Of a stretch of DNA of 64,000 bases, positions 5,961 through 7,075 are shown piece after piece. Below the pieces are notes generated by a model, which did no database searches, was not told where the DNA came from, and worked only from the letters and a program-made list of their open reading frames with translations. Numbering within the stretch: position 1 is the first letter of the stretch; each line of letters begins with the position of its first letter. Source of the stretch: Octopus sinensis (lineage: Eukaryota); contig NC_043017.1 of NCBI RefSeq assembly GCF_006345805.1, positions 4,526,001-4,590,000 on the forward strand, written 5' to 3'. A program made the translations under genes and the position numbers.

Positions 5961-7075
5961 ATGGAAAATGAATTACATGAGAATCAGGTTAAATGTAAAA
6001 CACAGCCTAAGATGATTTGTTTTCCTGATGAGATGCTGAGAAAGAAAGCAAAAGCATCTTACCAATGTGATGTCTGCAACAAGTCATTCTCTCAAAGAAG
6101 TCACTTGATTATTCATAAACGTATTCATACAGGAGAAAAACCGTTTCACTGTGATATCTGTGGTGAGTCTTTCTCACGAAAAGGTCACTTGACCACTCAC
6201 AAATACATTCATACAGGGGAGAAACCGTATCGATGTGATATCTGTGGTATCTCATTCTCTCAAGGATCAAGCTTAACCAAACACAGGCATATTCACACAG
6301 GGGAGAAACCATATCACTGTGACGTCTGTGGTAGATCATTCTCTACAAGAAGTCACTTAACTACTCACAACCGTATTCATACAGGAGAAAAGCCATATCA
6401 CTGTGACATTGTGGTAAATCGTTCTCAGCAACAGGTAACTTAACATTTCATAAGCGTATTCACACAGGAGAGAAGCCCTATCACTGTGATATATGCGGGA
6501 TATCATTCTCTAAAACAAGTGACTTAACTGTACACAGACGCAGTCACACAGGGGAGAAGCCGTATCACTGTGACATCTGTGGTAAATCATTCTCCGGATG
6601 TGGTGACTTAACGACACACAGACGCATTCATACAGGGGAGAAGCCGTATCACTGTGATATTTGTGGTAAATCATTTGCTAAAGCAAGTGATTTAACTATA
6701 CACAAACGCATCCATACAGGAGAAAAACCTTATCACTGTGATATTTGTAGCAAGTCTTTCTCTATAAGTGGTAACTTGACGAAACACAGACGAATCCATT
6801 CAAGAGAAAAACCATATCACTGTGATATCTGTGACAGATTTTTTTCGCAAAAAAGTCACTTAACTACTCATAATTTCATTCACACAGGAGAGAAACCTTA
6901 TCATTGTGATATCTGTGGTAAATCATTCTCTGTGACAGGTCAGTTAACTACTCATAAACGCATTCATACAGGAGAGAAACCATATCACTGCAACATCTGT
7001 GGTAAATCATTCACTCAGACAGGTAGTTTAAGTAGACACAAGTGCATCTCTTTAGGAGAAAAACTGTATAATTGA
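5961..7075 (+). CDS. C2H2 zinc-finger protein, 12 fingers (last one degenerate), interrupted by a 1-bp deletion at about 6410; pseudogene or assembly error
   Basis: ORF 5961-6443 holds the leader plus 4 fingers. At gac att gt ggt aaa one T is missing. The frame from 6410 runs open through 8 more fingers to TGA 7073-7075 and includes ORF 6776-7075. Splice acceptor ttcag at 5655. Restored length about 371 aa. Confidence 0.85.

Follow-up and report, generated by a model that had tools for sequence, protein, structure and literature searches.

N-terminal modules of clustered zinc-finger proteins

KRAB is a folded helical domain of about 75 amino acids that is encoded on separate exons and binds TRIM28. 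Shorter N-terminal motifs that dock chromatin cofactors include SNAG (Snail/Gfi) and the RRKQxxP NuRD-binding motif (Sall/FOG/BCL11A), and the consensus sequences of both are basic. Expansions of C2H2 zinc-finger (ZNF) genes are a headline feature of octopus genomes. A 2025 survey of these expansions in cephalopods defined four octopus-specific expansion clusters containing 104–495 genes (PMC12513265). In zebrafish, approximately 700 ZNFs carry FiNZ, a highly conserved, acidic N-terminal tag of 28 amino acids; knock-down of FiNZ genes with a start-site morpholino provides evidence for repression of TEs (PMC10547256).

We analysed a 64-kb stretch of the Octopus sinensis genome (hereafter the window, 64,000 nucleotides in all) in which C2H2 arrays are preceded by a common leader of about 24 residues. 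In its position the leader most resembles FiNZ, which we regard as the closest analogue, although the two are unrelated in sequence. Both are short (28 and about 24 amino acids), lie at the extreme N-terminus, are rich in acidic residues and are unlike known domains, and each marks one lineage-specific, massively duplicated and clustered poly-ZNF subfamily. FiNZ begins with MAFIKEE, as deduced from the morpholino (PMC10547256), whereas the leader begins with MENELCEN, a comparison that covers only the first FiNZ residues. FiNZ also occupies a separate exon that precedes the one for the fingers, while the Octopus leader and its fingers form one ORF. Finally, the hosts are cyprinid fish in one case and the genus Octopus in the other, and FiNZ is highly conserved, whereas the leader is weakly constrained.

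With KRAB, the leader shares the status of an N-terminal, acidic module that does not bind DNA and sits on rapidly duplicating, clustered C2H2 arrays. It differs in being a third of the length of KRAB, at about 24 amino acids, in lying in the same ORF as the fingers and in being predicted to be disordered. The original prediction had called the arrays KRAB-less, and this holds: PF01352 is absent from the Pfam lists on record for the Octopus leader proteins, while vertebrate matches in the same tables have it. SNAG and RRKQxxP resemble the leader in that a few anchor residues stand in a disordered stretch at the very N-terminus of a protein with many fingers, and in the docking of a cofactor that we propose for the leader; their basic motifs bear no resemblance to its acidic-hydrophobic MExEL and IDFPD(E/D) patches. 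The leader is a lineage-specific ZNF-associated N-terminal motif, a kind that includes KRAB, FiNZ, ZAD and FAX, in that one non-finger N-terminus recurs across many paralogues, and it falls outside any named family. No N-terminal motif or other non-finger part of the expanded octopus C2H2 genes is described in the two studies above (PMC12513265; PMC10547256), and a wider literature search found no description of an N-terminal motif in these octopus ZNFs. The leader is real and, it appears, undescribed so far.

Leader copies and gene units in the window

Four intact leaders had been predicted, at 5961 (+), 13528 (+), 22731 (+) and 57815 (−), and tblastn of the four peptides returned exactly these coordinates, with cross-matches among them at E-values of 1e-5 to 1e-9 in the 64-kb window. 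The same searches recovered the three damaged leaders predicted at 29500 (+), 37182 (−) and 43732 (+), and found no further copy near leader similarity anywhere in the 64 kb. In a six-frame scan, a C2H2 finger array lies directly 3′ of each of the seven leaders. In-frame stops are found 5–32 codons before the ATG of each intact leader (no more than 17 codons away for three of the copies), which makes the leader the true N-terminus of its ORF.

Codons 1–24 of copy 1 occupy 5961–6032 (+), as placed by tblastn and the ORF list, and are followed by a linker at 6033–6059 and the first finger, which starts at 6060. The leader of this copy is perfect, the ORF (5961–6443) is broken by a frameshift in the fifth finger, and the array resumes in another frame to position 6967. 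This gene (5961–6967, +) is probably a young pseudogene, or its frameshift a sequencing error. At 8589–8903 (+), 1.6 kb downstream of it, is a separate four-finger remnant that lacks a leader. Copy 2 (13528–13599, +) opens an intact gene of 315 amino acids and 10 fingers (13528–14475). Copy 3 (22731–22802, +) opens an intact gene of 451 amino acids and 15 fingers (22731–24086), in which the linker is down to five residues, and copy 4 (57744–57815, −) opens an intact gene of 255 amino acids and eight fingers (57048–57815).

The remaining three leaders have decayed in different ways. The leader at 29500–29571 (+) has an ATA in place of the ATG and contains in-frame stops, with a 13-finger array downstream at 29933–31003. 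The leader at 37084–37182 (−) keeps its ATG, has a TAA at codon 5 and has lost FPDE; a two-finger remnant follows at 36940–37086. This pseudogene is matched by an annotated Octopus vulgaris protein, P0072, the model of which starts inside the counterpart of the degraded leader. In the third (43732–43837, +), the original ATG is now ATA and the frame is changed by one nucleotide, and a new ATG at 43739 (+) restores an ORF of 336 amino acids (43739–44749) that retains only the second half of the leader. More generally, an out-of-frame ATG within codons 3–4 (AAAATGAAT) can replace the lost leader ATG and give an N-terminus of the type MNYVS. Such a start is present in Octopus bimaculoides P0168 as well as in the window gene at 43739–44749, and it may be inherited or recurrent.

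The six-frame scan places the finger arrays of the window at 6066–6967, 8589–8903, 13633–14451, 22824–24062, 29933–31003 and 43835–44737 on the plus strand and at 36940–37086 and 57060–57710 on the minus strand, with an isolated finger match at 78–140 (+). The window is AT-rich (33–45% GC).

Distribution and genomic context

The window aligns with O. vulgaris chromosome OX597834.1, at an identity of about 96% over the longest block. Positions 32791–46843 align with one O. vulgaris locus (L002, OX597834.1:40752334-40772699) in blocks of 91–99% identity, and this locus contains one extra tandem copy of about 4 kb, including an IS1595-type transposase gene. By this comparison the window is orthologous DNA from an organism very close to O. 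vulgaris, or from a different individual, haplotype or assembly. In the window, a 315-amino-acid ORF at 38393–39340 (−) has an O. vulgaris counterpart annotated with the Pfam family DDE_Tnp_IS1595 (PF12762), and at an O. bimaculoides locus (L003) a DDE_Tnp_IS1595 gene at 18884–19765 lies about 6 kb from a leader-ZNF gene. A transposase-like gene therefore recurs beside leader-ZNF genes. Two adjoining ORFs of 416 and 142 amino acids, at 49054–50304 and 50301–50729 (−), resemble, by recognisable sequence features, a DDE transposase of the pogo/Tigger type whose N-terminal DNA-binding part is CENP-B-like; a PDB sequence search returned nothing for the pogo-like ORF. SINE-like repeats of about 320–400 bp, shared with an unrelated O. 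vulgaris locus (L001) at 85–97% identity, occupy much of the DNA that separates the ZNF genes. Comparison with that locus places interspersed repeats at 19749–20086, 28386–28767, 31401–31718, 34326–34655, 47938–48256 and 52957–53282, among others.

Leader proteins were searched for with a 90-amino-acid query and with a profile that was run exhaustively against 1.84 billion representatives. Matches were accepted if their best stretch lay over profile positions 1–45 and at the N-terminus of the protein, which excludes matches built from the sum of weak finger similarities. The leader profile (45 columns) matched an O. vulgaris protein, and no exact match of the 315-amino-acid window protein is on record. 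Among the matches listed, a leader-only HMM picked about 25 leader-bearing proteins, and all those with a named organism come from O. vulgaris, O. sinensis or O. bimaculoides. No leader from squid or any other mollusc was present among these matches, which are crowded by multi-finger proteins. Altogether, the set comprises 29 distinct leader sequences; they represent three Octopus species and at least nine chromosomes or scaffolds, and in every case a finger array follows the leader. In all 20 leader-bearing genes from the window and nine other Octopus loci, the ORF opens at the leader ATG and continues into the fingers, with lengths of 80–903 amino acids (over 250 in 16 of the 20).

Public models of leader-ZNF genes are unreliable in their annotation. 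Among P0004, P0005, P0006, P0024 and P0001, some are short spliced products, while the loci mostly contain plain long ORFs. The P0024 model fuses two neighbours, as it continues across the 5′ flank and takes in the next leader, and the P0001 model splices into a repeat, at a locus where the ORF is cut at codon 80.

Consensus and predicted structure of the leader

The leader had been described as matching no recognised domain, and the databases agree. No Pfam family is on record for it, and no PDB sequence matches it better than E = 0.3. P0001, which consists of the leader and part of finger 1, has no Pfam match on record, and the precomputed Pfam lists of the other leader proteins (P0004–P0006 among them) contain zf-C2H2-type families or nothing. 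In an AlphaFold2 model based on a 23-sequence alignment, residues 1–29 have pLDDT values below 50 (41–44) and no secondary structure, while the two fingers reach 83–90. The leader is best described, on this model, as a disordered tail.

The consensus proposed from the window copies is correct for those copies. Over the 29 distinct leaders the consensus becomes M-E-N-E-L-C-E-N-x-V-K-C-K-T-Q-S-K-R-I-D-F-P-D-E, and the only near-invariant positions are M1, E2, E4, L5, F21, D23 and K31. E2 is retained in 27 of 29 leaders, E4 in 26, L5 in 24 and K31 in 25, while F21 is kept in 26 of 28 and D23 in 21 of 28. Cys is the most frequent residue at positions 6 (16/29) and 12 (17/29). It is replaced by His, Asn, Ser, Tyr, Trp or Arg at the former and by Tyr, Ser, Trp, Val or Arg at the latter, with ω of 0.54 and 0.74, respectively.

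Two stretches had been singled out in the original prediction as candidate short linear motifs, with co-repressor recruitment, SUMO attachment and degradation as possible roles, and they fared differently. IDFPDE contains F21 and D23, which are among the most constrained residues, while VKC (or VKCKT) is unconstrained and falls in codons 9–16, where ω is about 1 under the conservative model. A role as a SUMO acceptor is unlikely, since no conserved ψ-K-x-E is visible in the leader sequences. By eye, the window copies contain no such site, as V-K-C-K lacks an acidic residue at +2, and among the 29 leaders V/I-K-C-E appears only in some paralogues (L6b, L7a, P0009, P0125 and P0156). The leader could possibly act as a degron or as a signal dependent on acetylation of the Met-Glu N-terminus.

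Selection on the leader

For distant pairs, two-fold sites in this AT-biased genome saturate near p = 0.4. Nei-Gojobori dN/dS with Jukes-Cantor correction was therefore judged unreliable for such pairs and replaced by a maximum likelihood (ML) fit and by parsimony counting. The ML fit (GY94/F3x4, 18 genes) used an NJ tree with branch lengths common to all partitions. With a shared rate, ω is 0.44 for the leader (p = 7e-12 against 1), 0.72 for the linker, 0.18 for the finger framework and 0.76 for helix positions −1 to 6 of the fingers. When the leader and linker rates are left free, the ω of the leader rises to 0.62 (p = 0.018, ρ = 0.67), and ω is 0.59 for the linker, 0.17 for the framework and 0.71 for the helix positions. 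Parsimony counting, which uses each region's own synonymous changes, gives 0.93 for the leader (not significantly below 1), 1.14 for the linker, 1.17 for the helix positions and 0.30 for the framework (p = 1e-21). Both methods rank the regions alike: the whole leader evolves much like the linker and the variable helix positions, whereas the finger framework is about three times slower.

Within the leader, selection is uneven. With branch lengths fixed, ω is 0.30–0.45 for codons 2–8 and 0.34–0.50 for codons 17–24, both significant under both rate assumptions, and 0.64–1.0 for codons 9–16 and the linker. The number of non-synonymous changes per site is overdispersed (chi-square 56.4, 31 df, p = 0.0035), with one change at E4, one at F21, two at K31, three at D23 and 3.3 at E2, against a mean of 7.4. 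Neutral evolution of the leader had been named as the outcome that would speak against a conserved motif, and here the answer is mixed: the leader as a whole is close to neutral, while E2, E4, L5, F21, D23 and K31 change far less. At the level of single sites, a few anchor residues are constrained within an otherwise drifting tail.

The original prediction also conceded that conservation might reflect recent common descent. The pooled pN/pS among the four intact leaders of the window is 0.78, and the conservation extends into about 200 nt of non-coding 5′ flank, so that recent common descent accounts for most of the similarity within the window.

The 5′ flank and synonymous codons

Upstream of copy 1, a conserved non-coding flank at 5811–5960 (+) contains the blocks TTCAGATA..AACAAAGATCACAG..GATGGAAATA..GTAGAAATATTTGTTAGGAATAAAATAT, followed by TCTGTATATTGTGGTGA.AGAAGAAAAATT directly before the ATG. 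Equivalent flanks are located at 13378–13527, 22581–22730 and 43582–43731 (+) and at 57816–57965 (−). While about 200 nt of 5′ flank align between copies within the window, the family-wide alignment shows homology to about −150, across other chromosomes and other species (loci L005–L009 included), with GATGGAAATATAGCAGTAGAAATATTTGTTAGGAATA at about −95 to −55 and TCTGTATATTGTGGTGAGAGAAGAAAAATT at −30 to −1; the conserved ORF start of the leader then reads ATGGAAAATGAATT. Mean pairwise nucleotide identity is 0.53–0.59 in the flank and 0.76 and 0.71 in the two end blocks of the leader, over a background of 0.40–0.49. The flank is probably a promoter or 5′UTR. An origin from a dispersed repeat is ruled out, since the flank motif is found only upstream of leaders. 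A TTTGTTAG/GAATA site in the flank resembles a splice acceptor and is missing in some copies.

The codons of the leader are also conserved. The start context is ATGG (G at +4) in 18 of 19 copies, with A at −3 in 17 of 19. The fraction of identical codons is 0.80 in the leader, 0.79 in the linker and 0.66 in fingers 1–2. Fixed codons include TTT for F21 (18/18), CCT for P22 (12/12), GAT for D23 (16/16) and GAA at the anchors (17/17), with no synonymous change at all at F21 and D23; the finger region has the opposite preference, TTC and CCA. Because the unconstrained linker is equally low in synonymous divergence, we read the effect as regional. It likely reflects the inflated divergence of non-orthologous fingers, the youth of the family and possibly gene conversion at the 5′ end, and a nucleotide-level element within the leader is less likely.

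Origin and possible role of the leader

The reading that we prefer, and hold with evenly divided confidence, is that the leader is a lineage-specific ZNF-associated N-terminal tail in which a few anchors would dock a cofactor. The peptide, about 24 residues followed by a linker of about nine, is the non-finger N-terminus of a ZNF subfamily that is known to date from Octopus alone and whose members have multiplied in tandem and also spread to further chromosomes. Each gene consists of a single uninterrupted ORF of leader, linker and 7–15 or more fingers, and duplicates as a unit with about 150 nt of 5′ flank, probably its promoter or 5′UTR. The tail is predicted to be intrinsically disordered and most of its residues seem to drift at a near-neutral rate, so the strong similarity within the window is mainly inherited. 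The constrained anchors are the M-E-x-E-L patch at the extreme N-terminus, the (I/V)-D-F-P-D-(E/D) patch some 15 residues further on, and K31. Such an acidic-hydrophobic pattern in two patches is typical of a short linear motif. Most likely, we infer, the patches dock a cofactor that sets the transcriptional output of the DNA-bound finger array, as KRAB does in tetrapods and as is suspected for FiNZ in cyprinids. Patches that combine acidic and bulky hydrophobic residues are compatible with a co-repressor and with an activation-type contact alike. The loss of the start codon or gain of leader stops in the pseudogenised copies of the window counts in favour of this reading, while the 336-amino-acid ORF at 43739–44749, which stays open despite the loss of the first half of its leader, counts against it. 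Part of the leader's conservation may also lie at the nucleotide level, or stem from gene conversion or the youth of the family.

That last thought leads to an explanation that we consider possible, if on the unlikely side, in which the leader is filler inherited from the N-terminus of a founder gene. The copies would be similar through youth, perhaps with gene conversion at the 5′ end, and selection would act on the start codon and frame only. The parsimony estimates for leader, linker and framework fit this explanation, as do the pN/pS within the window, the synonymous sites that are still about 80% identical family-wide, the non-coding flank conserved together with the leader, and the half-leader gene with its open ORF. 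A leader-specific rate below 1 (ρ = 0.57–0.67) also gives a fit at least as good as that of stronger selection. It accounts poorly, however, for the overdispersion among sites, with five or six near-invariant positions maintained over 29 sequences, three species and many chromosomes, for an ML ω that stays below 1 even when the leader rate is free, and for leader end blocks that exceed the flank in nucleotide identity. We give a rather low probability to the proposal that constraint acts on the nucleic acid, with the first ~70 nt of the ORF and the flank serving as a promoter-proximal, translation-initiation or RNA element. Candidates would be the context of the start codon, an unstructured, A-rich region at the start, or a cryptic site for splicing or regulation within the GATTTTCCTGATGAG tract. 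Synonymous codons fixed at the most conserved residues against the preference of the finger region, their complete lack of change at F21 and D23, the uniform start context and a co-conserved flank of ~150 nt restricted to sites upstream of leaders all point this way, but the linker shows the same synonymous conservation with no amino-acid constraint, and the flank is less conserved than the leader end blocks.

It is very improbable that the leader is a small folded or metal-binding module, whether built on Cys6 and Cys12 or in the form of a dimerisation strand packed against finger 1. Cys is indeed the commonest residue at both positions, and a 2026 paper reports that β-strands adjoining single C2H2 fingers mediate dimerisation in Drosophila (PMC12774644). 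The model nevertheless gives residues 1–29 very low pLDDT and no secondary structure, both cysteines are replaced freely, and the PDB offers no match. On the predicted disorder and the variability of these residues, we reject a zinc-binding or folded leader. The preferred reading of a drifting tail with a few docking anchors has a bolder extension, which we think unlikely: the MExEL...IDFPD(E/D) tail may be the octopus counterpart of KRAB and FiNZ, independently evolved, and would link a ZNF expansion specific to Octopus, with possibly hundreds of members, to a single complex that silences or activates chromatin.

Significance for octopus zinc-finger genes

The leader provides a marker with which to define and count one Octopus-specific subfamily and to help correct its gene models, several of which in RefSeq and ENA truncate, splice or fuse leader-ZNF genes. 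The first 24 nt of the leader ORF have a mean pairwise identity of 76% across the family, so that a single antisense reagent against the start site might knock down many of its members together, comparable to the approach used for FiNZ in zebrafish. The leader is also a candidate handle on the effector mechanism of invertebrate KRAB-less ZNFs. Its weak overall constraint tempers this value, as it may be hardly more than an inherited tail in which a few residues are sticky. The idea of an effector role is plausible and draws on a handful of conserved residues; similarity within the window is for the most part inherited. If the tail does prove to be a counterpart of KRAB and FiNZ, effector tags for ZNF families in an arms race would have been invented independently three times, the third time in an invertebrate.
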